A DNA stretch of 64,000 bases, taken from positions 7,249,612 to 7,313,611 of the forward strand of contig CAJINV010000003.1 in the NCBI GenBank assembly GCA_905178155.1. The letters run 5' to 3'. Source of the DNA: Amoebophrya sp. A120 (taxonomy: Eukaryota > Protista > Dinoflagellata). Positions 3,379 through 36,750 of the stretch are shown piece by piece. The notes under the pieces are model-generated. The model searched no databases and was not told the origin of the DNA. It saw nothing but the letters and a program-made list of their open reading frames with translations. The translations under genes were made by a program, and so were the position numbers. Position 1 is the first letter of the stretch. Each line of letters begins with the position of its first letter.

Positions 3379-3398
3379 TGCTGCTGCTGCTGCTGCTG
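3379..3398. repeat. (CTG)6 microsatellite
   Basis: tgctgctgctgctgctgctg read directly from the sequence. Confidence 0.85.
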
Positions 3399-5375: not shown

Positions 5376-5982
5376 TCAGAAATGTTCCTGGCTCGAGGAT
5401 CTGCTACGACGGGCTTTTTTCTTTTTGTCCTTGTGTGACGAGTCGTGCTGACCAGCGACACCGTCTACCCCCTCCGGTCCATTCCCCATCATTTGGTCGT
5501 AGTCATCCAAGGAATCACTTCGCTTCATCTTTTTCGGGGAGGCCTTGTGCGGGTGGATCAGGTAGGTGTCGAGGTTGGGGGGCAGCACCGTGATGGTCAA
5601 GTCGTTGAAAATACCCCGGGCGGCACGAGTGAGCATTTCCAGGAGCTTCTTGCTGTCCGTAGCCTTCTCGCCGTTGACTGCAAGAATGGTGGAATGCAGT
5701 CGAAGCTCGTGGCTGCCAATGACTAACACCTCCAGCTGCCCGGTGGAAGAACTTGCCGCGGCCCCTGCTCGTGCGTCGGCGGACGCGTAGGGAATCAGTT
5801 TGGTGATGGTCAGCGCATTGTAACCGCTCGATGCCGCCCACACCTTCGGGTTCCCAACCCGGATTCCAAGTTCCGGAATGGACACCTCGAGCTTCTCGTC
5901 CAATGCATCGGGATCGGAACTTCGCACGGGGTGGGCATACCGAATCTCCAACGTCTTCGATGTTCGATGGGGATTCTTGGTC
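5376..5982 (-). CDS. Probable exon 6 of giant gene, degenerate PDZ-like domain and basic C-terminus
   Basis: Phase-2 donor AAAAG|GTACAT at 6360 matches phase-2 acceptor tacAG|G at 5983. The ORF has no ATG start of its own near its 5' end. LRLHSTILAVNGEKATDSKKLLEML resembles the PDZ betaD-alphaB region. Confidence 0.6.
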
Positions 5983-8900
5983 CTGTAGTTGGGACAATTG
6001 GAATTGACAAAAGTAGATACACGAAGGAAATAGCGACTAACTTCGTTCCGATCAGGACACGCATCGGCCGGAAAAGATTAAAAAAGGATCCTTACTCAAG
6101 CTCGCAAATAAGTATCGCGAAGATGATGATGAGCAACAGTCTTATTCGAACTATCTGCTCTCCGTCTTCAATGGATGAACGATACAAGTAAAATCAGACG
6201 CGGCATGTAATACGGCTGCATGCGTAGACAGATGGTTTGTCGACGCATGCAAATGCATCTTTGTCTTTCACAAGTCCGAACTCATAGATACAGTATTCAA
6301 GAAATTATCTCTATCTGCACTTGAAGATGAAAATCTTCCTCATTTCATTTTTTCATGTACCTTTTCACAAACTCCTGCGTGTTGCCGTCTTTCCAAATCC
6401 ACATGCCACTCCCACTGATGCTGGTGCCGTGCTCCCCTAGGCCGCTCATGACCCCGTCGACCCACTGGCCATCGTAGAAAGCGCCCTCCGTCCACTCGCA
6501 CCGGCCTCGACCGTGGCGATCGTCGTCGCGGAAGTCGCCGGCGAAGACCCAGTTGTTGGGCCAGTACATGAGCCCCTTCCCGTGCATGTGTCCGTCCCGC
6601 CACTGCCCCACATACTTCTTCCCGTTGCCCTTCTCGAACCCGGCCTCGTTCCACTCGATTTTTCCGAACCCGTTCACGATACCCTCACTAAACTGCCCCT
6701 CAAAGTAGCTGCCGTCGCTGAGCAGGTAGCTGCCGGCCCCGTGCTTCCGCCCGTTGAGCATCCACCCCTCGTAGCGGCTGCCGTCTGGGTAGATGACCGG
6801 CTCCGTGGTCTTGTACGGCTGCGTCCGGTCCTCGACCACCTCGATGGGGGGCTTGTGCAGTTTCGGCTCCCCAACCGGGATCTCAATGTCGATCGGCTCG
6901 CCGTCCTTGCCTCGCATCTCCATCACGTGCACCTTCTTGTGGCGGCCGCGGATCGCGTACCAGAAGAGGAAGAGCACCAGCACCCCGATCGCCGCCCCGC
7001 CGCCAATCATGACAGGCGGCTCCAGCAGCGGCGTGGCCTCGGTCGCGGACTCCGAGTCGGCCTGCGAACCGGTTGGAATCTGCCGCGTCACCGTGGTCGG
7101 CGCCGCGACGGTGAGGCCCGTGACGGCGAGCCCGGACAAGGAGCTGTCGTAGGTCTGCACCGCGTTTTGGAACGTGGACAGAAAACTCGACTGCTGATTG
7201 GTGATGGCGGAGTCGAAGTTGCTGGCCGTGAGCCCAATGGAGGCTGCACTTGTCCCCACCGGTGCAACCACGGTGAAGGCCACGGCCGCCGCTTGAGTGG
7301 TTTGCAGCTGCCGCTGTTGTAATCTTCTCTCGCGCAGGACGAGGAGGCTCGTGGTAGAAGCTGCCGCGGCGCCGAAGGTCACCGACGTCACTTCAACGTG
7401 ATCCACGGTCAGCTCCGCGATGTTCAGCTTCGTAATCACTGACGTTTTCGTAGCACTGGTAATGGCGTTTCGCCACTGTGTTTCCTCCGCCGAGCCGGCG
7501 GTAAAGCTGGGCACGTTGAAGGAGAGCCGGGAGGCCAGACCCTCTTGCGTCTGCACCTCTGCGCCCTCCACGACGCACATTGGTGCCGTGCCAGGAAGCA
7601 ACACCCCGTCTTTGCATTCGTAGAAACCGTGCAGCGTGTGCCCGTCCGCGCAAACCGGTTCGCATCTCGTGGCTGGTAGAGCGATCCCATCGAGGCAGGT
7701 ACCGAAGGTTTGCTGGTTCACAACGGCAGGTGGCTGCGTGGTGCAGGAGCAGCTCGCAGGTGTGTTTTCTTTGTGCGTACAGGCTTCCTGTGTGCGGTCC
7801 GCTGATGCTGGAATCGTAGCGTTATTGGCCGTACAGTACTGGAGATCGACCTGGATTTGTGATGTCGATGATGTGTAATTGCTTGCGTCAAAAACTTCAC
7901 TGTATCCGGCTATAATTTTTGCGCATCATGATTTGCCTACTTTTGTTTAGCTGAATCGTATGGTGGTCACGATCAGCTTGCTCAGTTTCAGTGCGACTAG
8001 AACCCAGACAAAGATTTGTCGCGGCACGGACGCAACAGCAGAGCCGGTCCAGGTCCAGAAGCAACTTCCTTACAAAAAAATCGTCAAAGTTAAAGTGCAG
8101 CTACAGCTTGTCTCTAGAATATTATAAAATCGCTTCATCTACGTTCTCGCGGTGTGTATGACTACTGGCAGAAGGCAGAAGAGAAAGTCCGGCATAATTT
8201 GGTCGCATCTCATGGCGTGCGAGCTACTGTCTAAAGTATGCAGCAAATGAAATCATCAGGCTGCAGCTGCGACATGCGGCTGCCGAATGTAACAGCTCCT
8301 TTTAATTATCTTTTATACCATCGTCTTGACGTGGTTGGTTTTGTTGGTGTATTGGCACTCCAGCGGCCGATAACGGACTCCAGGCCCGCAGTTTGCATTG
8401 GGGTACTCGCACTCAGTCCATCCGGCGCTTGCCTCGACATAGCCGAACCCGCCTTCGATGGGTGGCAAGTGACAGCGATCCCCGACGTATCCATTGACGC
8501 AAGCGCAACGGGACTGCGGCCCACCGGTGCAGGAGCCTCCGTTCACACATGGCGGGCACGTGCAGAATTCTCCGGAGTATCCGTTCTGGCACTGGCAAGC
8601 ACCGGTCACTTCGTTGCACGTGCCTTGTCCGTTGCAGGTCGAAGCCGCGACGCAGTGCGTGGTGCAGTTCCCCTCCGGGTAGTAATTCGGTTCACATGTG
8701 GCGCATCGTGGCGCGGCGAAGCCGGGCTTGCACTTGCAGATGCCCGTCCCCACCACGCCCGGCTCCTGCCCGTCGTAGCAGCCGATGCTTCCTCCTGCGG
8801 CGCAGTCACACGCTAGATTGCAGTAGTGGTTGTCGGTGGGGTGTTTTCCGTAGAAGCCCGGATTGCACCGACACTGCACGGTTGGGGTCAAGTTGTCAAA

Positions 8901-11900
8901 CCATTTTTGCACATTGAACGTGTACAGCAGTCGGTTTTGTGCGCTGGAATCAGTTGGCAAGAACATTTTTCGTCCCTCCCAGCTCCCAAAGAACTCGGAC
9001 ATCGACCGCAAGTTTTGCTCCTGATTAAAGATTTCCACGGATACGAAGCTCATACTGTTGTCTGCCGAGGCTTGGAGCGACGTGTCCACGAGAATGTGGG
9101 TATTTAAGTCTTCAAACGCTTCTTGGAGAACGTCGGACAGCCCTCTCTCGCGCTTGAACCCAAATTCGTCTCCGGTGTCGTCGTCGTCGGCACTCGTCTC
9201 AAGGCCCTGTCGCCGCGCACGAATGGCTTCCGCCCGCTGTCGCTCGGGCTCTTGCCGCATCTGCAGCTCCGGTACCACGCGCGGATTGTGCAACGGGTTG
9301 GAACTCACCTCGGTGACGATACTTTCTCCATTACTCCTCAACGCCCTCGTGTTGTGCGCATTGTGCAGCTCCGAGTCCGTACCGGGCCACCGCTTGCGGG
9401 GCCGGTGCTTCCCTAACGTCTGCAAGCGACCCAACCAACTATCGTATGCTCGCGATGATCTTGCTTCGCCATCTTCCTCTATCTGATGTTCCTCGGCGCT
9501 GGCAAAAGAGGGCGCCGTCAGCACGTCGGCGAGATTTCGCTGGAGCCGCAAGGCGGGAACCAGCGGGCCATATACATCGGAAGACTGGAAAGCCGAGTGA
9601 CAGGTTCCTGCGCCACAAGCGAGCTGCGAGGCGAGAGTGACTTGTTGGTCCGACGCTTTGCTCGCGAAAGTGCTGTCCAAACCGCCGGACTTGCAGGAGT
9701 GGTCGCAGTTTGATCCGTAAAAGCCGTCGGCGCAGTGGTGACAGTGCGCTCCCTGCCAGTTGAATTTGCACACACATGTGCCGTTGCCGGCACGACTGAA
9801 ACTTCGCGGCGTCGTGCCGTTGCGGAGACACTGATTCTGGTCACTGCACGTGGGGCCGTAGGTCTGGCCAGTGCCATCACACATACAGGAGCTAGGGGGA
9901 AACAAATTGTTCTCGTCCAGCAGATTCAAATTGCATGGCGTGGTCGTGGAGCTGGTCGTCGTGAATTGGTTCGGATCGGCCGGGGCGACCGCGGATATCG
10001 CCAGCACTTCGGCATTGAGGCCCTGCGACTTCATCGCGTCGGCAACGGCCGTAGCGTTGGTCAGTGCCGCATTCGGTTCCGTCACGAGCGACCGCAGCTG
10101 GTTCCAGGAGGAATACGCCTCTTCGTGCGCTGCTGCGCTCGCATTCGCGCTCGCCTGCTGCCCGCTCGTCAGGAAGGTCACATTGTTTGCCACTGCCGCT
10201 GCCTGCACCGCGGCGACCTATTGATTTTTTAAAATCGAAGTCTTCTACTAAGTCGTGTGAACATATTGAGTTTTGGTCATAATTGATCTCTCGCGCTTTT
10301 CTTTTTCCAACGAACCTACCATACATTAAAAAATGTACTGCACAGTATTCCAGGTATGGCTGCAATACAACATCACACACGAATCCTAGCTTCTCCAGTG
10401 AAAATGTCTACACGAAGCGATGAGAGCAGTAGATGCAGCAGAACTACCACGATACATACACACAAAGACTTAATTGATAGATAATGTGAATTTAGTGAAG
10501 ATGTAAATAGCAGTGCTTTTCCACCAACTACATGTCGTCTACAGTACCTGTTGTGCCTGCTCCACTTGCTTCGCTGCTACTTGCTGTGCAGCCGCCGTAT
10601 CGTTCAATCCGGAAGCCAAAGCGTCTGCGAGCATGATGCTCGCAGGCACATTGGCCAACGGTGCCTGCGAAGAGACACTATCCGCTGGCGTTTCCTTAGC
10701 CTCAACCGATTCCGCGGTCAAAACAGGCTTGTCTTCTTCGACCTGATAGGTTTTTTCAAGGAGAATGAACCGACGTTGTACAAGAACTTTGGAAACATAC
10801 ACGCTTCTTTGTTGTATCTAATGTATTTGGATAAAAAAATTTCAAACCAACTGCGCACTTTTGGCGGCCGGCAATGCTTATTCTTATGTATGTTTCGTGT
10901 TGATATAAACTCAGGTCGTGGTAGTCCCCGTCGTAGACTTAGTTTTTTATTTTTTAGTTAATGCATGAAAATGGCGCGACTACAAACCTCAGTCTCCCTG
11001 GCACGACAAAATCTTCGCTCTGTTCCGTGATCTTGAACATGGAAATACACGAATGGATTTAGAAACAGCGTCTCATACCTCGTAATTGACGTTGACACTT
11101 CCCGCCTGCACGGACACGACTTTGATGCGACCCAAAGGGATGCCGAGGAGGGTGGCAATCGAGTTCCGAAAAGATAGCTCGTTAGCGGCGGCATTTGATT
11201 CCCACGTACTGATGTCCATGGAGATCTTCATGTCGACCTGAACCACCGCGACCGTCTGCAGGAAAAAGCCTTTGTGCACAATTTGGTGGGAGTTGGTCGT
11301 GGTCCTCTGGTTGTACGTGTGCGCCACGGTGCCACCAAGTCCGCGCAGAACCATGGTAAAGAACTTCTGCTGCGGGTTCTGCACGTGCGCCCCGTGCGGG
11401 AACGCAGTCTCGGCGGAGGCCGCCACGCTGCCGGCGCACGGCGCGGCGCGGGTGCAGGAGGACTGGGCGCCGAAGGCGTGGATCGGTACTTGCTTGTTCA
11501 ACTTGTCACCCCCGACGGTGAGGTCGTCGATGGCCTCCCCGTCAATGTAGGGCCGGATCTTCAGTGGGGAGGAGAAGTAGATTTTGACCACCACCCATTC
11601 GGTGTTGATGAACGAGAAGAAGTGCAGCCACTGGGTCTGCGGCATACTGGCGGGGATCACCAGCTGGTACTCGTTGTGCACCTCCACCGCCATGGGGTAG
11701 AAACTGTGCCCGAACTCGCAGCCCCGGGGGCAATCGAGATGATCGTACATGTGCTGTCCCGCCGTCACGCGCCCGTCTGTTTTGCGGGTGATCGCAAAGT
11801 GCCCCAGCTCCCGCCGATCCCAGCCGCAGCAATCGTGATCTGCGGAATCCCAGTTCAACAAGGCCATGGGCATGTTCTGGCAAACGTAGCTGCCGCGGGC

Positions 11901-14900
11901 CGGGTCCGTGCACTTTGAGGCGTCGGTGAGCGCGGACACATCGGGCAACACTGTGGCGCGGCCGGCCGGGCCGGTCACTGACTTGCCTGTCAATGTGCCG
12001 TCAAGATCGGACAACCAGAACTGGAACATGCCCGGACTATGCAGGGAAAGCGACTGACTCAGAGGTACTGACTGCTGCGAGCCCTCAGAAAAAGCACACC
12101 GCAATAATATACCAGAGAGCAATCAACTCCCTGCGCTCTGGCACTGGGGTAATGACATACAGTTACAGATACAGATTTTTAGCGCATGAGCAGAAAAAAA
12201 ATCATCTGCCGGTGCGGGTACGGCTACGGCCTGCAAAACAAATAAAAAGTATCTCGATAGGATTGGTAGTTTTCATCTAGGGCAGCAGTCACTCTGTACG
12301 ACCACTCGCTTTCTTTCCATATGGACACCCTGGGTAGTCACACGAGGTGTCGGAGGACCCCTTACCGCGAAAGTAGCTCAAGTAGAACCGACCGTCAGAG
12401 GAGGGGTTCATTTCGGGAGCGTTCGAGAGGCGCCGGCGGGGGCTTTGCACCAGCGATTCGCCGTCGGACGCTTGCAATTGGACAACTTCCCCTGCTTGTT
12501 CTGTACTGGATGAGGTAGAGGTAGAAGACACCAGCGCTCCTGATTCGAGCGCACTTCTCGGCGCGGTAGCCAAGGACCAGGCTCCCAAACGAGACGGCTC
12601 TTCACTCGGGCCCAGCAAGGAGGAAAATTTTGCGATCTTCTTCGAAGATCGCCTTTTCTCCAGCAACTGCCGCCAGGGGCTGGACAACCTGCGTTGATCA
12701 GCGTCCATCATCAAGCGCTTCTGCAGTGCACACGAACCGCCACTAGAAGTAGATGAAGAACCGCAAGAAGTCGACAACACTTGCTCTTGGTCGCTCGTAG
12801 CGAGTAACAAGCCACGGCCCCCTTCAGCGCCGTGGTCATTGACATCATCGTACGCTACCAGCGTCTTGGGGAAGAAGTGCTCGTCGAGTTTGTGCCAAAT
12901 GTTCTTCGGATTGCTGTAATCGAGCAGCTTCACGTGTTCCGCTTCGTGCTCCTGGTTCCATCGGCCGTCCGCAGCAATACCAGATAAGCGGCGCATGCTG
13001 GCGCGATTGTGGCCCACCCAGGTGACGCCGCGAAAGTCGATGTTTGGGTTGAAGTCGCGGGCGGTTGGGTTGTACGTAATCGCGACTGAGTTGCGACCGC
13101 ACCGCCCGACGGGTGCGCCGAGGTACATTTCGTCCTTGTGGTGGAAGTACCCGATGCGAATCGTGTCCACGAGGAACTTGCCGTAGCGGCTTCCGCGGAT
13201 CCCGTACCGGTTTTCCCACGGCATCGCGCAGGTACGGTCCGGGATCAGGGCCTTGGGCGCAAAACACTGAGAATCGGGGATGTTCGGGCCGTCCTCGCAG
13301 GTGAAGCCGCGGTTCGTCACCGTGGGCGCCATGAACCCGATGTGCCGGAACGCCTTTCCGACGACGGACGGAGCCGTAGTTTGGTACAAGTCCGACGCGC
13401 GCGCAGAGCGCCCGTCCAGGGAGTCGGTGCAGGTGGAGATGTCCGTGGTGCCGAGGATGTCCGAGTATTCCAGAGTGAATTCAAGCGAGGTCTCGCGCTC
13501 CTGCCGGTGGAAGTGACCGTGGATGCCGATGTGGTTGTCGGACACAGTTACCTTCCGGAGCTTCAGCGAGCTCGGCTGGTCCGCCCACGTGATCCCCAAA
13601 TGGGCGTTCTTCCAGGCCGTCAGGTATTCAGCAGTAACGCACTCGTAGCCCGTGCCCGCGCAAGCCGCCGGACCGCCGCCGGCTTTGCTGCAGCCACGGC
13701 GGATGTGAAACCCGACCAAATTCCCGTAGGCGTGGTTGCGGGACGACTGCCGGTCCGGTAGATGCGCACCGTACACGTTGCGCTGCGCTTGGTTGTCGCA
13801 CGCCGGCGGCCGGAAGATGAAGCCGTGGTCCCAGGAACCCGCGGCGATGTTGCGCTGCAGACTAGAGACGCTGCCGTCGTAGTGCGAGTCGTAGGTTTGG
13901 AACATGGCCCGCGGCCAGTACACGCTGTCGATGGTGCGCAGTCGCTCGTCGATGTGGCGCCACATGGTGGAGCCAAGATTGTCCTCGATCTGGATGTCCC
14001 GGCCACGGAACACGTGCACCGCCGGGCCGTGCAACCGCGAAAAAAAGTTGTTGCGCACGGCCACGTTTGCCGGCCCCGCGATACGCAAGGCCTCGAAACC
14101 AGACACGAAGAAGGAGCACTGGTCCACGGAGGAGGCGCGGAAGTCGCGACCGGTCCCGGAGAAGAAGTACAGGGAGGGAATCTGGTAATACATTTTCCCC
14201 GTCTGCCGGAGGTACACGCTCGACAAGGCTGCTGTCCCCACGATCGAGCCGTCCTCGCTATCGACCACCGTAATGCCCGCCCCGTGGTTGAAGTTGTGAT
14301 CGAAGCCGTGGGGGAACTGCTGCGGGCTGAGACTGGCAGTCTCGGCCGAGCCGAACCGCACATTGCGGTCGAGCAGCGCGACGTGCGCCTTGAACCAAAT
14401 GTCGGCGTTCCCAGCTAGAATTTTGCCGGAAAAGTGCCGGCTCTGCGCCTGACCCTGAATACCAATCTTCACTGCTTTCCCGAACTCGAACTCGCTCCCG
14501 GTGACCAGTTCCGGCGCACTGGTGATGCGGAAAACTTCGGCTTGCGTCTTGATCTCGGCTGCTGAGTAGGGGTACTCGGTTGGAGTCACCTCGATTTCCA
14601 TGCCGACTTTCCACTCTGTCAAAGCAGCCTCGCAATCCACGAACACGAAGCGGTCGGTGGGGTGCGCAGTCTTTGCCAATCCGGTGAACGGACACACCAG
14701 CGGCTTGCCGTGCATCTGGAGCTCGCCCAAGACCCCGATCAACTTGTTGTTCATGTCGATGCCGTTCCGCATTGTGATCCCGGGCCACCCTTCCCCGTGT
14801 TCGCCGTAAATCTGCCGGCACTCGGCATTGGAGTTGGGACAGCTCTCTGGTCCGTGCAGCAGCACCTCCGCGTTCCCGAGGTACGGATAGCCTTTGCTGC

Positions 14901-17900
14901 CGACGAACATTTGGCCGTGCAGCTGCACCGCGTGCGCGCGCAGCGTTTGCGTGCTGGTGTGGTTCGCGCAGTCCGTCCACCCCGTGGCGCACATGTCTTT
15001 CACCCCGGTGATGAACTGGTTCTGTTTTTCCGTGGTGTTGTAGAACACCTCGTACTCTCGGCACGTCAGCATGCTGGGCTGGTCGTTCTTCCGACACGGC
15101 TTCTCCAACGGGCAGTGCGACGTGCCCGTGCCCGGGTCCGTGCAGAACTCGTTCTGCAGCAGTGGCGGCATAAAGGTGAGCTTCCCCAGAACCGTCAGCC
15201 GCCGGATCGCGGCAGTCTCCGTCGTCAGAATCACCGATTTGAACTCGTCGATCGTGACCACCTCATTCGGCTCGGGCACCTTGCCACTGGGCCAGGTGTC
15301 CGGGTTCTCCCAGAGCTGCGCCGTCGCGGACGTCTGCGCCGGCGCCACGGGGCAGCCCTCGACGGGGCACTGGAATGCGATGGGGTTCACCGTGCTCCAC
15401 CCCGTCTTGAGGCTGTGTACCACCGCGAGGCTCCCGCTCGCACCCATGTCGGCCAACTCCTGCTGGTAGCGGAAATCGGTCGTCGTGTAGCTGAAGGTCA
15501 GATTGGTCGGCACCGTGATGGTGCCGGCGTCCAGGTCGTCGCGGCCGAGCGCCTGCACGGTCTGGAACACACCGCTGCCCGAAGACGTCTCTTGCGTGAA
15601 GGTGAGGAAGTTACTCAGGTACCGCTGGATCAGCCGGTCGGGGTTGTCGCGGTCGCGCCAGTCGCGCGTCAGCATTCCAAACCGGTCCATGGACTGCTGC
15701 ACCTCGTACAGGTCCAGCGGATGCGTCACCAGGTGTGTGTCCGATTTTGTGACCCGCAGTTCCGGCACGTCCGTTTCGTTGGTCCAGCCAGTCGTTGCAG
15801 TGCCGTCCGTGCGAAACTGCCCGCCCGGGTGCTGCACGACCACCTTTTTGTACGTTTGGTAGCTGTGGTGCGCGGTGCTGAGCTGACACACGCCCTCCGC
15901 GAACCGCGCACAGCACCCGTTTCCGGTCGCGCGGAACGTCATGAACATACAGTTCGTCTCGAGCAGACACAGTGCCTTGCACTGCGCCAGAGAGGTGCGC
16001 TGCCCCGCGGTGTTCTGGTCGTCGCAGTCCGCGTAGTACCCCGTGCGCGACTTACGAAACCCGGCCGTGTCGCAATACCCGGTTCCGTGCAGCAGCATGT
16101 CCTTCTGACCCGTGCTGTTGCTGAAGCTACCCAGCTGCACAAACATCGCGTGCGCGCCGTGGCCGTGGTACGGCGTGGGAAACTCGTTGAGCTTTTGGCT
16201 CGGCTCGAACTCCGTGTGTACCCGGTACAGGGCGTGGGCCCCGTCCCAAGTCGAGGCCAACTTGCCGACCTGGAAGGTCTTGCGGAAGTTCGGTCGGAAG
16301 TAGGGATACATGGTGCCGCACCACTCCTCGTCCTGCCGCTGCCACCCGTGCCCGATCCACGTGGACCATTTCATGAAGTCCATCGGCGTGGGGTGCGGGT
16401 CGAACGAGTACCAGAAGGGCAGCTCCGCATAGCGGGCGTATGGCGTGTGCCCTATCGTCGACGGGTACATCGGCATCTGGCCGGTAGTCACGCTGTCGTC
16501 CATCACCATCGCCGGCGGGGCTACGTGTTGTTTGTTCCATTTGGCCAGCACCATAGGCCAGCACCACCCGTTGTGGCCGTTCGGCGAGCACGCCATCGAC
16601 CGGTAGGGGATATCGTCGTGCCCCGCCGCGGAGCTGACGCGCAGCTCGTGGTTGTCGAAGTTGGGGAGCGCGTACCCGGTGAAGTCCATGATCCCAGCGT
16701 ACCGTACGTGCACGTGCTCACGGTTGCAGTGCATCTCCTTCGAGTTTGGCGCGTTATCGATGAAGCGGCACAGGGGCCCGGTCGCTGCGCGGTCGTAGGC
16801 ATCTGCGTTGGGGGGCGGCACGACGCCTTGCGGGGTGTGGAGCGCGAGCGAATTCCGGGTCCACTGGTTGAAGCCGAACTGGCCCGTCATGTAGCCACCG
16901 TGGGTCGTGAACCCGGTGACGGAGCCGTCCAAATCGTGCCAGATTGCGTACCGGCTGTAGGATTCCGTCCACAGCAGCCCCCCGGTCGCGTTCACCAGGG
17001 TGACGGCACTCATGCGGTGCGTGGGCACCAGGTAACCAAAGGCGGGGCAGTTGAAGCCGCCGGCGAACGGCGGCTGGTCGCCGTAATTGACGATGGTGAT
17101 GTTGTGCATCCAGTACCCGTCCTGCCCGTTGAAGTAGAACCCCAGACCCGGGTTGCGCCGGTTGGGCTCCTCCATGTCCCCGACCATGAGCCAGTTTTGG
17201 AACATCGGCCGCGCCGGGTTGTCGTCCGGGTCCGTAAACTTCGTGACGTAGCCAACGCCCGAAGGCTCGATCACGTTGAAGTCCCAGTAGTGGCAGGGGT
17301 TGCAGAGCTTCACAAACAGCGTCGCCCCGCAGTGCACCGCGGTGAACTTGTTGACGTACAAGTCCAGGTTCGGAGCCCACGCCGGGAAGAACTGGATGGC
17401 CATGCCGCAGCCCACAGCGGAGTTGTTGACCATGTGGTTGTACTGGATGCTCTCCCCCGCGAACTCGCCTTTCGGGTTGAAGCGGTACCCGAACGCCGAG
17501 GCGTAGCCGACGTTGCTGTCCCAGATAACGCTCCCATGCACTGCCCAGTAGGCCGCCGGGGTGGTATCGTCCGCGAGGCCGAGCACCATCGGCAGCGCCT
17601 TGATGAACACGTTGTTGCGCCACACGGTCTCCTTTTCGTCCCCGTTCTCGATCTGCATGTTGTGAGCCTTGATCAGGTACCCCACGTTGCCCTCCGCGAC
17701 GGTAAACTTCGTGGAGTGCGCCACCACGCCGCGCATGAAGGAGTGGTGGATCGCGCAGTTGTGAACGTACGACTTGTACACGTCGACCTGCCGGCCCGGG
17801 GACATCTTGTGAAAGTGCGTGCAGTAGCGACCCATCTGGCCTCCCTGGCCGCAGTTCCGGACCTCCACGTCCTTCAGCCGGTATTCGCCACCGTAGAACG

Positions 17901-26900: not shown

Positions 26901-29900
26901 CATTAGATTTAGAGCCATTAGTTCCATTTGTGCCATTAGCCGGCACACTCGTCGATTCCGTCACGTTCCGCATCTCTTCTCGCACAAAGGGGTGGTTGCA
27001 AACCCCCCGCTTGTTGCAGATAGCGATCGAATCGCACTGGCTGCAGTCCGCCCCCGTCCAGCCGTGATCGCACGTACAAGCCAAAATGTCTTGCGTCTGC
27101 CCGTTCACCTGTCGCTCGACGGCCCCGCACTGCCCGTGGCCCGAGCAGTGCTGTGTGGCGTTACAGAAAACGGAGCACGAATTTCCGTAGTAGTTCGCCG
27201 CGCATGTGTCACACAGCGCTCCGTTGAAGCCCTCCTTGCACTGGCAAGTGTTTTGTCCAGGCGCGGTGGTGGCATCGGAAGAGCAGGACAGCGTGTTGCG
27301 CGGGTCGCACGGAGTCTTTCCAACACAAACCGTATCGCAGTGCGGAAAATTGATGTACCCTGGCGCGCACTGATCGCACCTCGGTCCGGCAAATCCCGTC
27401 TTGCAGACGCAGGTCCCATCGGCGCGATCCCGTTGCGGGTGAAAGAGCCCGTCGTTGCAAAATGCCGTGCCGGCCTGGTGGCAATTGCAGTCGCGGTCGC
27501 AGTTGGCGCCGAACCGGTTTCGTGGGCACTGCACCTTGCAAATACCCGCGTAACTACCGTCGTTGGTACTATCACTGGCGCTGCAGCAGGCACCATCCTT
27601 CTCCGGATGGCATCGCCTGGAACACATGATGGTGGTCACCATGGACTCGTCGTTCGCCTTGGAGGCGTCATTGCCGCCGCCCGGATGCACCACAATGGGT
27701 AGCACCAACCGATGGGCCCCCGCGATGAAGCCATTCTGTGCAATGTGCACCTCTACGTGCCGCATTTCCTGCGTCAGATCAATGTTGGCCTGCAGGATCG
27801 CGATACCCGTACCCATGGTGGAATTGGCGAAGCTCTTCACCATGTCGGACGCGTGTTGCGCCACACTCACCACGTCGTTGTGATTCGCCAGATAGAACCC
27901 GCACTCGTTTCGAGGCTCGGTCAAATTTGTGAACACGGTCTCGAGGCTGGAACAGTGCCCCGCGGAAGTAGAGTCGTTGAAGCGCTTCATTTCCGGCCGC
28001 TCGCTAAATTGGCACTCGACCGCGCCGCAATCCTTGATGTGCACGTCCGCATCGGCGCCCACCGTTGTTTGCAGGGCTCTGTCAAAGTGCAGGAAGAAGA
28101 GCACAGTGGCCATGGTCGCGTTGCCAGAAGCTCCACTCGGACCGCTGTTGTGCTCGAAAACTCTGTAGTCAAAGAAAAGCATATGCGGCGCCCCGTTTCC
28201 GTCTGTAGGAGCTGGGTGGTGCTGGTTATTTGTGCTGAAGGTGTACATGGTTTCATTCGTGAACTCGTAGCCTGGCGTGGGTTGGTTCCAACCGACATAC
28301 TGCTTATTTCCGACAGCGTTCGCGTCGCGGATGACCGCCTGGGAAAAATCGAGAAAGTACGTGGAGTTTTCTTCCAACGCTTGCTGGAGTTCCTGCGACG
28401 CCAGGGAGAGACGTCGACCCGCGGCATTCCGGTATCCGCCTCCTGCGACGGAGTCGTAGGGCAGCGGCAACGCGATGCGAAAAACTTCGTTCGCAGGTTC
28501 CACTTCGACATCGGTGTAGTTCACAACCGGCTGCGGATTCACAAAATCCACATAACGCTTGTCAAAAACGGCAGTGTCGTTCGGCTGCTTCATCACTTTG
28601 ATAAAACCTGACACGGCAACAACTTCATGCGAAAACGTCAGAACGAGCGGGTCGTGAGGAGCGTGGTCCGATGTACCGTTTTTCGGCACGGAGTCATAAA
28701 CCAATAGCTCGAGCGGGTAGCTCGGCCGCGCGGATTCGTTCGCGGCACGTGTCTGCGTAAGATTTGTCTTCGGGTGGTAGGCAGACCGACACGCCGCACA
28801 GTTTCCTGGCCCGGAACAGGGCTGATCGGTACGCTTGAAGCCGTCCGCGCACTCGAGCACCATACTGGCGGCCGTCGCAACAGCTGACGAACCGCTGCTC
28901 GGGGCTGCAGAAAGCGCTCGCGGGGAAGATACTCCCGGTGTACTATCAGGTGACGAAAAACCCATGGCTACGGCAGGTGTTGTCAAATCGGCGTGAAGCT
29001 CGGAGCTCGAATCAACTAAGTGATCACTATCCCATGCGATCCGGGCGTCATCGTCCGCCAGGTGTGCCGGTGCGGCTTTCATGCCGAACGCCGCAAGGCG
29101 CTGCAGCAGTGCACTTGAAGAAGGTTTGCGCGCCGCGGGGAGCGGCGCGGCAGAAGATGCATCATCGGCGCTAAGACCGTCCGCGCGGAGGGCACGGCGG
29201 CCAGAACCTTTTGGCGTGGCGAGCACGTAATTTGGCGGCAAAGCTAGGTTACACTCCGCACCTGTGTATCCCTGTTTGCACACGCACGATCCCCCGGAGG
29301 TGCCCCGGATGCAATGTTCCGTTCCAACCGGGTCACACTTGCACTGGTTCTCACATCGGGTTCCGTAGAAGTTTGGCTCGCAGACGCACTCCAGTTGTCC
29401 GTTGCGCACTTGGCACTCGCCTTGGCCAGCTACGCAGTGCGGACACGTGGCGGCCGGCCGCGTGATGCCTCGGTTCGTGCTGGTCAGCAGGCAGCGGGTA
29501 TTGTCATAATTTCCGTGGAACAATTCGGCGCGAACCAGGGGCGTGTATGACAAGTTGTCGATGAGCTTTGTGCTCTCGTTTGCGAGCGGAAACACCGCGG
29601 GCGCGTACTCCGTGGCGAAGCTCTGGCCCTGGAGAAGATCGCCCGCAACCACAACCCCGAAAGACTCCCCCGACAAAGCCGATTTTGGGAAGACTTCGAG
29701 CGCCGCAGGGGTGCTGCCCCAGTGGGATTTGTGCATGCAAGGCTGTGGTCGAAGAGCAGGGGCCGCAGTCGTGCTAGTACCTCCGCCCGCCCCGCCCGCG
29801 GTGCAATAACTCTCGGCCTTCACCATGTTGATGACCACTTTGGCCTCGGTGGTTACGGTCGCCACACCGCTGTACCGCCCGACGCGCATGGCTTCGAACC

Positions 29901-32900
29901 GCTCCAAGTATGGAACAGCCGTTGTATTGCAGCGGATCCGGGTGTCCAACACCTCAGTCACCACGCAGGCGGACTTGGAGTTGGATGTCTCGTACGTACC
30001 GCGGTAGAAATACGTGAAGTTCGTTTCCAAGAAAACCGCGAAATTCGCAAGATCCAGCACCATGGTAGAGTCGGGGTTGATGGCCCGCCGCTGTTGCAGC
30101 GACATACCGGGGACCAGCGCTGGACCGGTGTGAACCACCGTCGCAGCAGCGGTAGACGAAGCAGGGGCGGTAGAAGAGTTCGTCGCATTCGACGTATTGG
30201 ACGTCCCGTTGCTTTGATTGCCACCGGCGCTGGGAGGACCCGCAGCAGACAGCTCGCGGCGCGACGCGCCATACATGAGTGCTCCAACGGCGTCAAAACT
30301 ATCGTCCTCGCTGGTCGTGACTTCTTCATCGTCTGATGTTAGCTGCCGATGCAATTGGCTTGACGAGGGCAATCCACCCAGAAAACCGTACCCCTCGATG
30401 GTGGTTTGCACACCGCCCGCCAGACCATGGAAATCGTCCGGGGTGACGCGTGTCACGTACATCGCGGTGTCAAGCTGCTCCCCGGTCAGCATGGCATAGC
30501 CGAATGGCTTCACCGAAATTTTCGGTGTGAGTAGGAAATCGCTCACGCCCCTGTACATTTCCGGATCCAGCACGTAGTGGTTGAACTGCGTGCGCAGGTT
30601 CGGGTCCTCCACATACGTGGGCGAGTCAAAGTCGCGGGAGAGCCGGCAGGTCAGTCGCGTCGATCTCACCTCCTTTATCAAGCAGTTGCGACTCACACGC
30701 GGCTGGCCGCTCATGGTTTCTACCAAATCCACCGTGATGTGCTCCGAGTAGTCGAACGCGGTGTCGTTTTGCGGATTCAACGAGCCCGGCAAGTCCAAAT
30801 ACCCCAGCCAGGCTGGCGAGAAGTCGAAGGTCAGAACGCCCGGAAACCCGACCGCGAGTTTCACGGGCGCGAGGCTTTCGACCCGGCTGGTCAGCGTCGG
30901 GTCAAATGTAAAAGTGAAGTCGTGGATGGTCTCGTGTAGAATCTTCAGACCCCGCTGCTCGCAGCTGTAGTGCGGGGCGGCATTGCACGCCACGGCGATG
31001 TAGGGCACACGGCAGTACAAATTATTCGGCAAGATGTGGTCCTTTTTGCTGAAGCTCGTGCCGTCGTAAAAGAGCGCGGCGCGCGTCACGTTGGTTGTGT
31101 TGTCGGCGGCAGGTCGGTCCGACTCTTCGAGCGTGATGTTCCACATGTCTTCCCGGTGCGTGGCGTTTGCGTTCCAGCCCAAGTGAATGTGGGCGCAGGT
31201 GATTCGCTGCAGGCCAAATCCAGTGAACTCGATTTCAGTGCCGCCTGCAAGGGACCCCGACGTCGGGTAAACGTTGTGCAGTTCCAACGCCACGTCCATC
31301 GTCAGGTTCTGGCTCATCGCGAACCCCTGACCACCGATGCTGATCTCCGGCTGCAGACCCCGTCCAACCGTTCCGTCCTGCAGCGTGCAGGTCACCTCAA
31401 AGCGGGTGGCGAATTGGAAATCCTTGAGCGGATGCACGATCGAAACGTTGGCGGACTGTTCTGCTCCGGCCGCTGATGCGCCGCCCCCGGCGCCGAGAAG
31501 CGCACGGAAGTTGTCGTCATTCTGGTCCGGACAGTTCTCAACGCAACGGTGCTGGGTCACGAGGCAGTCCGAGTTCCCGACCGTGATGTTGAAGTCGGAG
31601 GTGCGCAGCCCGTACACTGAAGCGTTCACGTTCGCAAAAAGCGGCTCACCCAGCAGACTAGTCCGCACGCTCCTACCACCGCTTCGCGTGATCACCACTG
31701 TGCCGTTCTCACCCATTCGCGTTGCCGCCGACCCCTCCCCGCGCGGCGCCATCAAATGTCCGTCCTGCGTAAAGACCACATCCTCCGCGACGACGGCCGG
31801 AACACGGTTCGTTTTCCGCATGGCCATGCTCGCCTCCGGAAGCAGCACGTTGGACAGCACAAACGTCAGCTCCGCACCGGCAGTGACTGTGACCGCCGAC
31901 GGACCGGAGAGCGCTGCTGATTTCGCGCCGGGCTGATTGTTTGCGTTATTAAGGACCATCACCGCCTCAACCTGTGGCGTGAAAGATTGCGAAAATTGAA
32001 AATCCGCACTCTGGATGTACTTCGATGCGGCCAGGATGTTGTTGCTCCGCATCTGTGCCTGTGGCACCGCGTGCGGCACTCGCAGCCAATCCGCAGGGAT
32101 GTACTCGTAGAAAAGCGAATTTCGGTTACCGCCCTCTTGGACCATGTAGAAGTTGATCTCGGCACCGGTCCCGCCCAACTCTGCGAAGTCACTCCCGGAA
32201 TACTCCGCATACAGGCGGCGGGGATCCACCGGGTCGTGGAAGGTATAGGGGTCGATGAAACGAATCCCGTACGAGAAGCCTTCCTCCGGGCGTTTTTCGT
32301 AGTCCGCGTTCCAGTCGGTACCAAGGTTGAAGACCTCGATCCGCGGAAAGATCTTCAGCAGCGCCTCCTGCACCTCGTAGCGCTTCACGTTGTAGGGCAG
32401 CGAAGTTGTGCAGCTCCGTGCCACCGTGGCGTTGGTTTTCGAAGAACCTCGGCAGAGCTTGAAGTTGCCGGACAGGGGTGCCGACTCTTCCTGCGACAGG
32501 GTAACGATACCCCGCGTGTAGGGCGTCTCGGCCGCCGTGGCGTTACGGGGCGGCACCATCTCAAAGGTTGCGTGTGTTGTCTGGCCGTACAGCCCGTGTG
32601 TGCCGCTTCCCAGAATGCAGTTGAAGGTGATTTCGAACCCGACCGCGAGTCCGGCACTGGTGGCCTGCGCCGCCGCAGCCGTGACGGTAGGCAAGCAGTC
32701 CTTGGTGTACTGGATCGTCGATCCGGCCGCTGATTTCGCTCCCCGCAGCGCCGTTTCCAACGTCGCGGTGTCCGCCTGGTCCACGCGGACTTTGTCGGTG
32801 AAGTACTCGGTGTGGCTCAGGTCGTGCGACACCTTCACCTTCACCGAGTAGAACTGCCCGGCATCCGACACGAGAAGCGCGTGCTTTTCCCGGTCGCGCC

Positions 32901-35900
32901 GGGCGGTCAGCGTCATCTTTTGCATCTCGTACAGGCCGCTGGTCTTGTAGAACGCCTCCTTCTCTGCTTCGGTGAAAATCTGGTGCCCCTCCGCCGTGTG
33001 TGTGTCGTTCGCGTAGGTTCCGTTCAGCCAGGGATCGTGCACCGCCACGCCGATCTGCAACCAATTGGCGCTCCAGTGGAACTCGTCGTTGTGGTAGATG
33101 CGCATGGGGTAGCCCGCAATGCTGGAGTTGTGTGCGTTTTGAAACTTCATGCGCGGGCTGCGCTGACGCACCGAGTGCGTGGTCAAGTCCGGGTGGCTGC
33201 ACGTGCTGCCCTCGACGCTCTCTCTCGCGGCCCCGTTGGCAGGCACAAAGGGATTGTTGCTCTCGCTGCAGTACACGTAGAAGGCGAAGGGGTCGTCGGG
33301 CCGCCATCGATCCACCCAGTGGACAATTTTCCCGACCTCCGTCCACAGATTTACGTTCGGCTCGCTCCCGGTGAAGTCAATCAGGACCTTCGCGGACAGT
33401 TCGGCCGCAGTGAAAAACTGGTACTCCGCGTCGGGGGAAAAGTAGGACGGCGGGACGAAAAAAGTTTCCAGGACCTGCTCGAACTCGTAGTAGCCAGACC
33501 AGTCCGCGGTTCGGTCGCGCCACTGGTCCTGCCAGGCCTGGTCCCATGTGTGCAGCTGGCGGCGGATCGGACCCCGCAACCAGGTACCCTTTTCCTGCCC
33601 GAAGGGCTCGGCAGAAACTGACTCGGCCGGGTTCTGGCTCACGAACTGGATCCGGTCCGCGTTCTCGTTCAAATTTACCGGGTTCATAAACACCTTGGAA
33701 ACACCAAGCAGCACGTCTTTGCGCAGGCCTTCCGCGTATGCGACGTTGGGGAACATATTGTCGCTGTTCACCCAGCTCGCGCGTTTCCCGAAGGTCTCTG
33801 TGTGGCCAGGATGAAGTCCGGAGTACAGTCGCCATTTCGTGCCGCGGCCGCCAAAGAATCCGTGCAACGGCAGTTGCGTGCGCAATCCACCCTGTTTGCT
33901 GGTGCTCGAAGCGCCGACGTCGAGGCAATCCTGTCTACAGGTCAGAGTGGTCTCAACGTCCGTCCAGGCGCCGCTGCTCTTTGTGACTGTAATCTGTTGA
34001 TGTTTCTTCAGCGAACTTGTCCACACGTGCCGATTGTCGTGGTACCCGGGCTCCTGCGCAAAGGTGGACCCGTCGGGGTTCACGTAGTGGCCCCCGTCGC
34101 AGTCCCGCTTGCCCTTGCAAATCCCCCCCGCGATTTCGTGCGCTTGACACAACCTCCTCCCATCCATTGCACACATACGCGCAGCGTCGTGAAAGGACAC
34201 TTTGTGGTTGCCGGGCGTGTAGCAATCCTTCGGCGTTAGTTTTTGCCAAGTGTTTTCAAAAGGCTCCGCGTTTTTGTTCACCGAATGGCAGAACTGCCCG
34301 TCTGTGTCGCAACACAAGACCGTGTAAAGCCGACCACTTTGCGCCGGATCCGCAGCTTCGTGCGGCGGCACCATGACTTGGTGGTCGGTGCCAAAATTGG
34401 GGTTGCCGTCGGTCAGTCGAGCCTTGGAGACGACAAGCGACACATTTACCGGTGATACGTGTGCCTGCATGTCGGAGGAAAGGCCTTGGCAGGAATTCTG
34501 CAACGGCACACCGCCGGACAGTGCGTGCTCCGTCACGTCCCACAGGATGGTCTTCGAAGAGGTCGTGGAAGAGCCCACCGAGACGCGTACCTCCGCGCAT
34601 CCCGTGATGTCGTCGGCGTGCGGAGGCAGCAACAGCGCCTCCTGCTGGCGCTGCGTGTCCAGCACCTGAGACAGTGACTGCTGGTAGTCCGCATACGCCG
34701 CCTGGCTGTTTGAACCCGAGAAGATCTTCGGGATGCGACACTCGAAATGCGTGGAATTGAATGCCTTGTCCGCAATGACGTGACACGGAATGTCGTTTCG
34801 CGGCCCCAAAAAAATCCGTGTGGTGTCCACGTTGAAACCGGTGCCCCGAATTTGCAGCACTGCGCCGCCAGTCGGACTCGCAAAGCGCGGACTGATCTCG
34901 TAAATCTCCGGGTACATAGCCATGTCGTAACTCACTGGCGGCAAGTTGCTCGGTCTGTCATCTTCAAAACGTCGTAGGTGCTGATCGAGTGAACTTTCCT
35001 CCACCCCAATGGTGAACAGCCCAAAAGGCCGCGGTTGGTCCGACTTCGTGTTGAGAAACTGAGCATGCCCGTACCCGTCGGGGCAGTCGGCCGCTGTTTG
35101 GCAAGTGCACTGCAGGTCCGAGCACTTCGCCACGTCGTTCAGCCCATTGGGGCGGACGAAGAGGGAGAACCGGCCCCAGCCCGGCTGCAACCACCCCTGG
35201 AGGCGACACGTGAGGCCGATCTTCTCGATCACCCTGTTGTTGTTCTGCAGGTTGTAGTCGTTCGTGTTTGCGAACCGGTTCGCTAGCAGCAGCTCGTCGG
35301 CGAGGCAGGTCGAACCCCCGACCCTTGTTTCCGTCTGCGACCAGGTCTTCGCGAGGATCTGCTGTCGTCGGTAGGTGGAAGAGCGGGCTCCGTACGACAA
35401 AAAGTCGCCGACGGCCAACCCGAAATGCGACACAAATTTCACCACCGGCGTTTGCTCGTATTCGTAGCGGAACACCACCGAGGGGTCCCGGACGCGTGCG
35501 TAGGTGCCACCGCCCGCGGCGTCCGAGATGATCAGCACTTCGAGCGTGACATTCATCGGCTCGGGCACCCGCGGGGTGATGCAGATCAGCTCGGACTGCG
35601 TGCTCATGGGAAGCATCACTGGGCAGGCGTATTGTCCCAAATAGACCGTTTGCTGCGAGTAGAGGTTGATTCGGTTTGGATCTAGAAACCCGTCCCCGGT
35701 GATGCGCAGCTGCAGGCCCCCCTCGAGACTACCCCGTTTCGGGAAGAAGTCGTTGACCTTCGCAGCATGCGTGAACAGACTTGCACCAGTGCACACCGCG
35801 AAAAACAGCTGAAGAGCACGCGACAGCAAGGTTCGAACTGAACTTTTTTCGCTAGAAGTAGCGCTCCTTGTTCCGTGCGTTGGGGAGACTGAAAGAAAAG

Positions 35901-36750
35901 GTCGCAGTCTGCGAAGAGGACAATTCATTGCCGTCTGTTGTCGTCTTATTCTTGGCATCGTCTTACTAGAGGACGAAAACATCCCCTGTCGCTGCTCAGA
36001 AAAACAGCCCCCGGCGTTTTCTTCACCAGCATCGTTCGGCAGAGCTTGTCTTCTTGTTTGCCCTATTGCTGCGGAGCTCGTGGTGATATTTCTCGTTTCT
36101 CTACTTGCACTTTTTCTTTTTGTTCGGGCACGAGATGAGAAATAATCGTCTGGTATCACTCTGTCGTGTGTACTGCCACTGGAAGATTCGATTCTCGACA
36201 AGACAGAGGCCTGTAATTTCATCGGTGTAGTCCCACCTTTCGCGGAGGAAGGAAACCGTGCATTCGCGCAACTCCTGGCTGGCTCATCATGGCGGCCAGC
36301 AGCAGGAAACATAGGTAAAACGCGCGCTCTCGGGGCGGCCGTTGGTCGCTCCATACCCGGAGGGAAGAGGAGCGGGTTCTTCACGAAACCAAACCGCTCG
36401 TCAGAGCAATCAGAATCAAAAGTCGAGATGTTGGCCTTCTGTCTTATTTTTTCTTTTCGGTCGCTGGATTTCGCGCTCGAAGTAAAGGACGACGAACTAC
36501 TGGAAGGCGTGCCTCGTCGGACAAGAAAGAGGCCGCTCTTCCATTTGTTCGACGTTGCCACCGTTCTTCCCGGGCGAAAATCCTTGATATATTGACCGCC
36601 AACAGAAGCACCAGGTTGTGGTTGCGTGGGATCTGGTGCGTCTTCTGTTTCCTCTTCCTCTCTTGAGGCTTCTGAAGTCGTACTACCGCTAGGTCGACCA
36701 GTACCCCGGAGCGACCTGCTTGCTGTTACATCCTCGTCGAGCACAAGCAT
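5376..36750 (-). CDS. Giant (~9,857 aa) fibrocystin-L/PKHD1L1-like single-pass membrane protein with MORN and PDZ-like cytosolic tail; exons 36750-12327, 12037-11079, 10742-10548, 10217-8319, 7850-6361, 5982-5376
   Basis: Six exons join in frame (29,574 nt = 9,858 codons including stop). Four introns are GT-AG (10743-11078, 10218-10547, 7851-8318, 5983-6360) and one is non-canonical (12038-12326). Junctions restore domains, e.g. CDYPGCP|GMFQFWLSDLDGTLTG and TSP1 ...HVKTM|VDLQYC. The start codon is uncertain (first ATG 36750; alternative ATG 35928 lies just before the hydrophobic segment). The last exon is the least certain; without it the protein ends at 6345. Confidence 0.8.
6361..7850 (-). 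CDS. Exon 5 of giant gene (end of TSP1, sushi/CCP, SEA-like, transmembrane helix, about five MORN repeats)
   Basis: TM helix VMIGGGAAIGVLVLFLFWYAI (6951-7013) followed by RGRHKK. MORN consensus repeated: YEGWMLNGRKHGAG, YVGQWRDGHMHGKG, FAGDFRDDDRHGRG, YDGQWVDGVMSGLG. Confidence 0.9.
8319..10217 (-). CDS. Exon 4 of giant gene (EGF/laminin-EGF repeats, start of TSP1 domain)
   Basis: Covers the 631-aa ORF. EGF motifs (CVNGGSC...CACVNGYVGDRC) and TSP1-type WTEC...CGPGVRYRPLEC. aatAG|GTC acceptor, ATG|GTATAA donor. Confidence 0.88.
10548..10742 (-). CDS. Exon 3 of giant gene (Ala/Gln-rich linker)
   Basis: tatcAG|GTC acceptor and CAG|GTACTG donor, both phase 0; 195 nt. Confidence 0.75.
11079..12037 (-). 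CDS. Exon 2 of giant gene (fibrocystin-L C-terminal-type region plus SEA-like domain)
   Basis: Open frame with LSDLDGTLTG and FRNSIATLLGIPLGRIKVVSVQAGSVNVNYE. Ends at GAG|GTATGAG donor. Confidence 0.85.
12034..12326 (-). mobile_element. Introner-like non-canonical intron (GTCC direct repeats, ~40-nt degenerate terminal inverted repeats)
   Basis: Minus strand GTCC-ATATGGAAAGAAAGCGAGTG...TGACTGCTGC ... GCAGCAGTCA...CAGTCGCTTTCCCTGCATA-GTCC. Removing 289 nt fuses the two ORFs in frame. The best registers are GT..TA or TC..AG, never GT..AG. Confidence 0.8.
12327..36750 (-). CDS. Exon 1 of giant gene: IPT/TIG repeats, PA14-like, laminin-type EGF clusters, Big_5-like Ig, PAN/apple, discoidin-like, two G8 domains each followed by a PbH1 beta-helix
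   Basis: 8174-codon open frame. TIG motifs (PKRGSLEGGLQLRITGDGF, PTSGSLAGGTEIEFTGFG, PRNGTARGNTLVTLSG). G8 starts (KWSDPANW..LPRRGD at ~18777; LWENPDTWPSGKVPEPNE at ~15315). Beta-helix text (GQGGQMGRYCTHFH, CAIHHSFMRGVVAHST). Many CxCxxGF/YxGxxC EGF repeats. Confidence 0.93.

Follow-up and report, generated by a model that had tools for sequence, protein, structure and literature searches.

The window analysed here, a 64,000-nucleotide (nt) stretch of the dinoflagellate Amoebophrya sp. A120 (assembly GCA_905178155.1, contig CAJINV010000003.1, positions 7,249,612 to 7,313,611 of the forward strand), harbors a transcribed gene, the six exons of which encode one giant surface protein. All features given below lie on the minus strand, and residues are numbered from Met1 (ATG at 36750). 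The gene stretch has a guanine-cytosine (GC) content of 0.57-0.64 versus 0.43-0.49 in the flanks, and contains a single open reading frame, which runs from 36813 to 12289 over 8,174 amino acids (aa) without a stop, with its first ATG at 36750. Exon 1 (coding part 12323..36750, 8,142 full codons plus 2 nt) is followed by intron 1 (12034..12322, 289 nt), exon 2 (11079..12033), intron 2 (10743..11078, 336 nt), exon 3 (10548..10742, 65 codons forming a linker without Cys), intron 3 (10218..10547, 330 nt), exon 4 (8319..10217, 633 codons), intron 4 (7851..8318, 468 nt), exon 5 (6361..7850), intron 5 (5983..6360, 378 nt) and exon 6 (coding part 5376..5982, codons 5982-5379 and the stop at 5376-5378). 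Introns 2-5 are all of GT-AG type, unlike intron 1, and the reading frame is preserved over all splice joints, yielding 9,857 codons from the first ATG and a protein of ~1,071 kDa.

To support the exon model we exploited two RNA-seq runs (X9 and X10) and two Logan contig sets (X1 and X4), which were mapped to positions 6450-12449. A 31,606-nt contig of X1, with a depth of 219, skips 12034-12322, 10743-11078, 10218-10547 and 7851-8318, precisely introns 1 to 4, and shorter contigs of X4, originating from a different sample, display the identical four skips. Congruently, 0.72-0.77 of the sampled words of 5300-12400 are present in X1-X4 versus 0.99-1.00 in the DNA runs X6/X7; the former share is expected after removal of ~1.8 kb of introns, and thus X1-X4 represent transcript assemblies. 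Junction 5 (6361|5982, GT-AG) lies outside the mapped stretch and intron 5 is predicted, but relatives are contiguous across it, the proteins P0001 and P0040 reading QEFVKRTKNPHRTSK at this point. The environmental protein P0001 (7,540 aa, 68% identity) aligns colinearly to exon 1, starting at residue 2288, and to exons 2-6, and it is exact through all five junctions (DYPGCPGMFHFW, NYEVEEDKP, QAQQVAAV, ITMVDIAY and EFVKRTKNPH), where the Amoebophrya model has DYPGCPGMFQFW, NYEVEEDK, QAQQVAAV, VKTMVDLQ and EFVKRTKNPH. At the exon 1/2 junction, the two proteins read DYPGCPGM(F/H)FW. Thus the six exons, the coordinates, the length of ~9,860 aa and the junction peptide YPGCPGMFQFW, all put forward by an earlier sequence-only reading of this DNA, are correct according to the spliced contigs and P0001. 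Four of the five junctions are joined in contigs and the fifth is backed by P0001 and P0040, and in the contigs exon 1 is connected to the downstream exons, with no transcript end near 12289. The genome (searched assembly 115.5 Mb, 401 contigs) has one copy each of exons 2 and 6.

Intron 1, the joint of which is seen in both X1 and X4, consists of a 284-nt unit of TAT...ATA form plus a GTCC direct repeat, so that four nt fit on either side of the joint. Its ends form an imperfect inverted repeat of ~19-20 nt, with 15 of the first 20 positions complementary. Introners of Amoebophrya have been described with 3-5-nt direct repeats over the boundaries and 8-20-nt inverted repeats at the ends (PMC7789003). 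Exons of A120 have been reported to have 56% GC, introns 46.5%, and two thirds of the introns to be without GT-AG (Farhat et al. 2021, PMC7789003), in agreement with the exon and intron GC and the non-canonical intron of the present gene. Intron 1 appears to be an ordinary Amoebophrya introner element, alike in its non-GT-AG ends, its 4-nt direct repeat and its inverted repeat, and with no notable difference. The locus clearly illustrates how a reading frame of 1 MDa can hinge on the excision of a transposon-like intron that lacks GT-AG ends. Two other ways of splicing here were rejected. Canonical GT-AG splicing of 12037-12328 (292 nt, in frame) is at odds with the contigs, which skip 289 nt, and with P0001, which keeps the Cys of DYPGCPGM; the GT-AG pair in question is located only 3-5 nt from the ends in use, and is unused in the contigs. 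A GTAAGG...CAG alternative (12365/12231), which would terminate the protein, is unsupported by the contigs, a rare isoform being compatible with the contig data.

All profile, sequence and fold searches were run exon by exon. For Pfam, whole pieces and overlapping 460-aa tiles were used (E<=1), complemented by a family-specific TIG profile. The ectodomain opens with TIG 1 (35524..35772, aa 327-409, Pfam E 2.3e-8) and TIG 2 (34711..34911, aa 614-680, Pfam E 3.5e-7), each recovered also by the family-specific profile. A weak TIG at aa about 1820-1890 (Pfam tiles and family-specific profile) and three further TIGs with linkers (18838..22020; aa 4911-4998, 5324-5381 and 5833-5971; Pfam and family-specific profile) complete this domain type. 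Next, G8 domain 1 (18373..18753, aa 6000-6126, Pfam E 5.4e-18, at the same place in a genome search) is followed by CEMIP-type beta-helix 1 (17578..17916, aa 6279-6391, Pfam PF24606 E 7.5e-20), which matches the TMEM2 chain 8c6i by phmmer and is 87-93% identical to P0001. A second unit is formed by G8 domain 2, split by an insertion (14683..15297, aa 7152-7356, Pfam and genome search), and the beta-helix 2 region (12940..14682, aa ~7357-7937), which is recognized through a BLAST match to residues 3168-3633 of the Klebsormidium fibrocystin-L P0002 and a weak Pfam Beta_helix match.

Interspersed with this scaffold are laminin-type EGF modules (PF00053), tandem units of eight Cys that occur in four clusters (best E 7.5e-23), as the earlier reading had claimed and as Pfam confirms. 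Cluster A (29245..29514, aa 2413-2502; EGF_laminin and EGF_TEN) and cluster B (26239..27603, aa ~3050-3504; EGF_laminin E 2.4e-10 and 8.2e-11) both display internal repeats, while cluster C (22201..23094, aa ~4553-4850; EGF_laminin E 7.5e-23) comprises four stretches. Exon 4 combines a linker and a single laminin-EGF with an acidic/basic spacer and EGF cluster D, and closes on a Cys motif reminiscent of TSP1. The EGF parts of this exon were detected as EGF_laminin and EGF_2.

Several other modules of the sequence-only reading have no counterpart in the searches. Discoidin, TSP1 and sushi gave no match by Pfam (E<=1, tiles), PDB sequence search or Atlas, and PDB sequence searches aimed at TSP1 and sushi, with the Cys-rich parts where exon 4 closes and exon 5 opens, recovered EGF only or nothing. 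The TSP1-like stretch, W..C..CGPGVRYR..C, is split by intron 4, was searched exon by exon and is seen as a motif only; for P0001, which is contiguous across the intron 4 site, the precomputed Pfam annotation shows none of PA14, discoidin, TSP1 and sushi. All four modules thus remain pattern-level guesses. Analogously, the PAN/apple and Big_5-like Ig modules fall below the Pfam thresholds, Big_5 with 22.2 bits against a cut-off of 23.6. The PAN_1 stretch (aa 6910-6962, nt about 15865-16023), located between the G8/beta-helix units, reaches E 0.035 and 14.4 bits, below the cut-off of 21.4; true PAN domains are present in the protist family members P0010, P0013 and P0018.

Exon 2 has no Pfam family, yet it is the best-conserved exon, with 86% identity to P0001, and a counterpart is found before the membrane and after beta-helix 2 in 14 fibrocystin-L-like proteins. 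An AlphaFold2 (AF2) model, generated from a 15-sequence alignment (predicted local distance difference test, pLDDT, 68), matches residues 942-1160 of TMEM2 with a Foldseek E of 6.6e-9; in VIA the same pair superposes over 200 residues with Z 11.7 and a root-mean-square deviation (rmsd) of 3.3 A, the next match having Z 4.8. Weaker fold matches were obtained to accessory beta-sandwiches of glycoside hydrolases. The model thus suggests a post-helix beta-sandwich domain of the fibrocystin/TMEM2 type, perhaps with an SEA-like end. As the resulting G8 - beta-helix - beta-sandwich unit spans intron 1, it provides a further argument for one gene. No relative of exon 2 was found among the metagenome contigs. 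At the end of the exon (11079-11140) we observed a motif, RIKVV.V..GS(V/T).(V/I), common to Hematodinium, Klebsormidium and other fibrocystin-L-like proteins, with RRRR/RRAR sites just downstream in other homologues. Residues 263-311 of the model align to 605-653 of alpha-dystroglycan, an SEA-like segment, in a weak and short match (Z 4.3); this segment ends at the known G|S autoproteolysis site. The G-S motif may represent a processing site of SEA or convertase type, as in animal fibrocystin.

The protein is anchored by a single C-terminal transmembrane helix (6951..7013, exon 5 aa 280-300, hydropathy scan), preceded by a juxtamembrane stalk and directly followed by RGRHKK, from which a cytosolic tail of ~560 aa extends. 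The equivalent transmembrane layout is present in P0005 of Hematodinium. The tail carries five MORN repeats (6408..6773, exon 5 aa 360-481; Pfam 63 bits versus a cut-off of 22.5), all five fitting the tandem 23-residue YxGxW..G...G.G pattern, and then the C-terminal domain of exon 6. The helix and MORN tail of the earlier reading are thereby verified. Its PDZ-like last exon is probably right as well, judging from Atlas neighbors and a fold model. Exon 6 has no Pfam match, and HMMER against 1.84 billion representatives returned P0040 as sole match; all ten family-bearing Atlas neighbors are PDZ, however, as are the top Foldseek matches of the AF2 model. In VIA, this model superposes on the Dvl2 PDZ with Z 9.7 and an rmsd of 2.0 A over 87/91 residues, and 236 chains reach Z>=8, hinting at a PDZ fold with an inserted loop (5553..5966, exon 6 aa 6-143). 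The phi-G-phi loop is ELGI, and WGF in Hematodinium.

The stretch between TIG 2 and EGF cluster C (23041..34632, aa ~707-4570) stands apart as an insert, mostly with no assignable domain, that holds EGF clusters A and B. Among 37 family members, P0001 aside, almost nothing matches it, and comparison of the insert to itself revealed no repeat family besides EGF. Where P0001 shares it (aa 2288-4537), the identity is 45-68%, versus mostly 72-93% for the core (56% in one 250-aa window) and 87-93% for the G8/beta-helix part. By sequence comparison, the protein is a member of the fibrocystin-L family that has been enlarged by a faster-evolving insert of ~3,900 residues, doubling its size.

A search with G8-1/beta-helix-1 recovered 36 relatives of 2,263-6,307 aa, only two of which possess MORN: P0004, an environmental protein of 4,014 aa (41% identical), and P0005, complete at 4,961 aa, translated from the Hematodinium transcript GEMP01000012.1 (the accession prefix GEMP01 denotes Hematodinium, PMC6642578). 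P0005 exhibits, in order, a signal peptide, TIG, G8/beta-helix twice, the exon-2-type domain, a transmembrane helix, MORN and, at the end, a domain visually similar to that of exon 6; sequence searches do not reveal the exon 6 domain between the Amoebophrya protein and P0004 or P0005. The 34 relatives without MORN include, where the source is named, proteins of Cafeteria and Vitrella, a Branchiostoma 'Fibrocystin-L-like' protein and platypus fibrocystin. PA14, PAN, kringle or discoidin modules turn up in some members of this set of 34. A separate search retrieved Klebsormidium nitens KFL_005590010, 'Fibrocystin-L' (P0002). In a G8/beta-helix tree, the Amoebophrya protein resides inside the set of fibrocystin-L-type family members and, together with P0001, P0004 and P0005, on one side of a branch with support 99/93; among the relatives found, the MORN tail is restricted to these four proteins. 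The pair of the Amoebophrya protein and P0001 sits on a very long stem.

With fibrocystin/fibrocystin-L (PKHD1/PKHD1L1) the Amoebophrya protein has in common a signal-like start followed by TIG, two G8 and beta-helix units in order, the conserved post-helix domain and one C-terminal transmembrane helix, and the BLAST/HMMER matches are colinear over the TIG, G8/beta-helix and post-helix parts. In contrast, it is ~2.3 times longer than fibrocystin-L, has no detectable PA14 and only six recognizable TIGs, compared to 14 in Klebsormidium fibrocystin-L, and it has a lineage-specific insert of ~3,900 aa with EGF clusters as well as an EGF-bearing stalk. The tail differs too, with ~560 aa of MORN and a probable PDZ fold rather than the short tail of animal fibrocystins. 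Thus, of the fibrocystin-L scaffold that the sequence-only reading had recognized, TIG, the two G8/beta-helix units and the post-helix domain are sustained while PA14 is not, and its TIG array shrinks to six. Hematodinium P0005 and P0004 belong to the same subfamily and share the module order, but they are half the size, lacking the stalk of exons 3/4 and the bulk of the insert (aa 707-4570), and only 39-41% identical in the best-conserved region. TMEM2/CEMIP (PDB 8c6i) shares G8, the CEMIP-type beta-helix and the beta-sandwich (TMEM2 942-1160); however, TMEM2 is a type II protein of 1,383 aa with one G8/beta-helix unit and without TIG array, EGF clusters, MORN or PDZ. As judged from these colinear matches, the protein is an enlarged variant of the known fibrocystin-L family and not a new kind of system. 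The case for novelty is weaker than had been proposed: the scaffold with MORN/PDZ-like tail already occurs at 4,961 aa (Hematodinium) and 4,014 aa (environmental), and ordinary fibrocystin-L-like proteins are widespread in protists. In the literature we found no description of this family in alveolates, and the supplements of the Amoebophrya papers and of the chromerid genome paper make no mention of fibrocystin, G8, TIG or MORN.

The ends of the transcript were approximated from the same X1 contig. It continues 25,091 nt beyond 12449, which would place the 5' end at ~37540 if colinear and leave a presumed 5' untranslated region (UTR) of 36751..37540, with a GC of 0.475 and 11 upstream ATGs. 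At the other end it continues 1,938 nt beyond 6450, for a presumed 3' UTR of 4134..5375. The first ~307 codons (35830..36750) are of low complexity, not coding-like and possibly untranslated. The GC at third codon positions (GC3) is 0.34-0.56 in the first ~300 codons versus 0.74 for exon 1 overall, and therefore the real start may be near Met257, 265 or 275 (window 35982, 35958 and 35928). These in-frame Mets occur shortly before a hydrophobic stretch (35770..35829, aa 308-327, seen in the translation) that abuts TIG 1 and resembles a signal peptide or signal anchor; in Hematodinium P0005, a classical signal peptide occupies the equivalent place ahead of TIG 1. Starting from Met257-275, the protein may comprise 9,583-9,601 aa with a signal peptide of long n-region. 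In the RNA-seq run X9 we also noticed 139 reads with template-switch oligo at 7070, marking a discrete cDNA 5' end a short way upstream of the part that codes for the transmembrane helix. This end could represent a reverse-transcription stop, a few amplified molecules or an internal start of a short transmembrane-MORN-PDZ transcript. X10, from the same study as X9, has no reads in 6450-12449.

Aggregated, we favor, with fair but far from full confidence, one six-exon syndinian gene for a fibrocystin-type membrane protein with a MORN-PDZ tail and a role in coat or adhesion as the best explanation overall. The gene gives rise to an mRNA of ~31.6 kb and encodes a membrane protein of 9,583-9,857 residues. 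Its ectodomain follows the fibrocystin/fibrocystin-L plan, with N-terminal TIGs, more TIGs, two units of G8 and right-handed beta-helix and a TMEM2-like beta-sandwich, lengthened by the ~3,900-residue insert and by the extra EGF-bearing stalk of exons 3-5. Such an ectodomain may serve as a very long surface coat or adhesion fiber, the conserved G8/beta-helix/beta-sandwich head of which would bind a glycan or matrix ligand. One transmembrane helix would anchor the protein, and the MORN-PDZ tail could link it to the membrane skeleton, the alveolar cortex or the C-terminus of a partner. The suggested role as surface coat or adhesin draws on analogy, as PKHD1L1 is a stereocilia coat protein (PMC6707252), and for the bacterivorous flagellate Cafeteria, the table of domains differentially expressed during growth on bacteria includes entries for fibrocystin-L, G8 and IPT (PMC7852580).

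A number of observations weigh against this explanation. Neither start codon nor 5' end is fixed, and with Met1 in use the hydrophobic stretch would serve as an anchor inside the protein instead of being cleaved off as a signal. X9, the RNA-seq run of 2026, reaches only the 3' end (6450-7070), with zero depth upstream, and X1-X4 carry the label 'RNA?' only and, being assemblies, leave room for minor isoforms. PA14 (PF07691), which fibrocystins regularly carry among their TIGs, was not found by Pfam at E<=1 on the 460-aa tiles, nor was GLEYA; Pfam likewise lists no PA14 for P0001, P0004 and P0005, and the putative PA14 stretch at aa 405-615 had no usable match in the Atlas search. The TIGs recognizable by Pfam and the family-specific profile total only six. 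Furthermore, ~3,900 residues, about 40% of the protein, are without assignable domain or fold, and the AF2 model of exon 6 is of low confidence (mean pLDDT 51).

Among the alternatives, a flagellar or surface sensory receptor that signals by regulated cleavage, with the MORN-PDZ tail as the signalling part, is unlikely but deserves consideration. Signalling of this kind has been proposed for animal fibrocystin. The conserved RIKVV.V..GS(V/T) at the exon 2 end with the RRRR/RRAR sites just after it in homologues, the alignment to alpha-dystroglycan ending at the G|S site, and the discrete cDNA 5' end of X9 would all be congruent with a cleaved receptor; on the other hand, the SEA-like match is weak and short, and the tail is devoid of any recognizable enzymatic or nuclear-targeting module. 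A further alternative is that the protein serves mainly to bind or cleave polysaccharide, like TMEM2/CEMIP, and so to breach or remodel the host cell covering rather than to adhere passively. Here, the G8/beta-helix units and the TMEM2-like domain are the most conserved parts, the best solved match, TMEM2, is termed 'cell surface hyaluronidase' in its PDB entry, and the weaker fold matches of exon 2 point to accessory domains of glycoside hydrolases. The architecture, with EGF, TIG and a long stalk, is however of structural or adhesive type, and to our knowledge catalytic activity has been shown for no fibrocystin-type protein, and we regard this role as quite improbable. Least likely by a wide distance, two or more genes, with a giant secreted protein stopping at 12289 and a separate downstream EGF/transmembrane/MORN gene, would accommodate the in-frame stop at 12289-12291, the lack of GT-AG ends on intron 1, the short, terminating exon from donor 12365 and acceptor 12231 and the stop of the X9 reads at 7070, yet this arrangement is dismissed, as contigs from two samples connect 12323 to 12033 at full depth, P0001 carries DYPGCPGMFHFW unbroken over the exon 1/2 junction, exon 2 belongs to the family scaffold, and P0004 and P0005 hold scaffold and tail within one protein.

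Returning to the coat or adhesion protein, a bolder version is conceivable, in which the faster-evolving, Amoebophrya-specific insert turns a conserved syndinian fibrocystin-like receptor into a dinospore host-recognition fiber that determines which dinoflagellates a given strain can attach to, while the force of attachment would be passed on to the alveolar cortex by an SEA-like G|S cleavage module together with the MORN-PDZ tail. We consider this extension a long shot, but if true it would define an adhesin class that is new for parasites among the marine alveolates and separate from the microneme adhesins of TSP1/vWA type. Syndiniales (marine alveolates, MALV) are among the most abundant marine parasites, and we know of no molecule identified on the surface of their infective spores. 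The present gene represents a concrete, single-copy and evidently well-expressed candidate for such a spore-surface molecule, with an exon model and junction peptides at hand. Moreover, its conserved (G8/beta-helix, exon 2) and fast-evolving (insert) parts lend themselves to comparison between strains that differ in host range. From a wider perspective, the fibrocystin-L scaffold, in animals a component of cilia and stereocilia coats, appears to have gained a MORN-PDZ tail in a group that includes Amoebophrya and Hematodinium.

Two more G8 loci were encountered in the genome, at G000:C2:12497050-12497319 and G000:C34:35853-36044, their open frames measuring 1,057 aa and 100 aa; both lack the exon 2 and exon 6 domains. 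Finally, X5, an estuary metatranscriptome of 2025, contains ~6% of the sampled words of 5300-12400, and from these shared words either this strain or a close relative would appear to be transcribed in the estuary sample.

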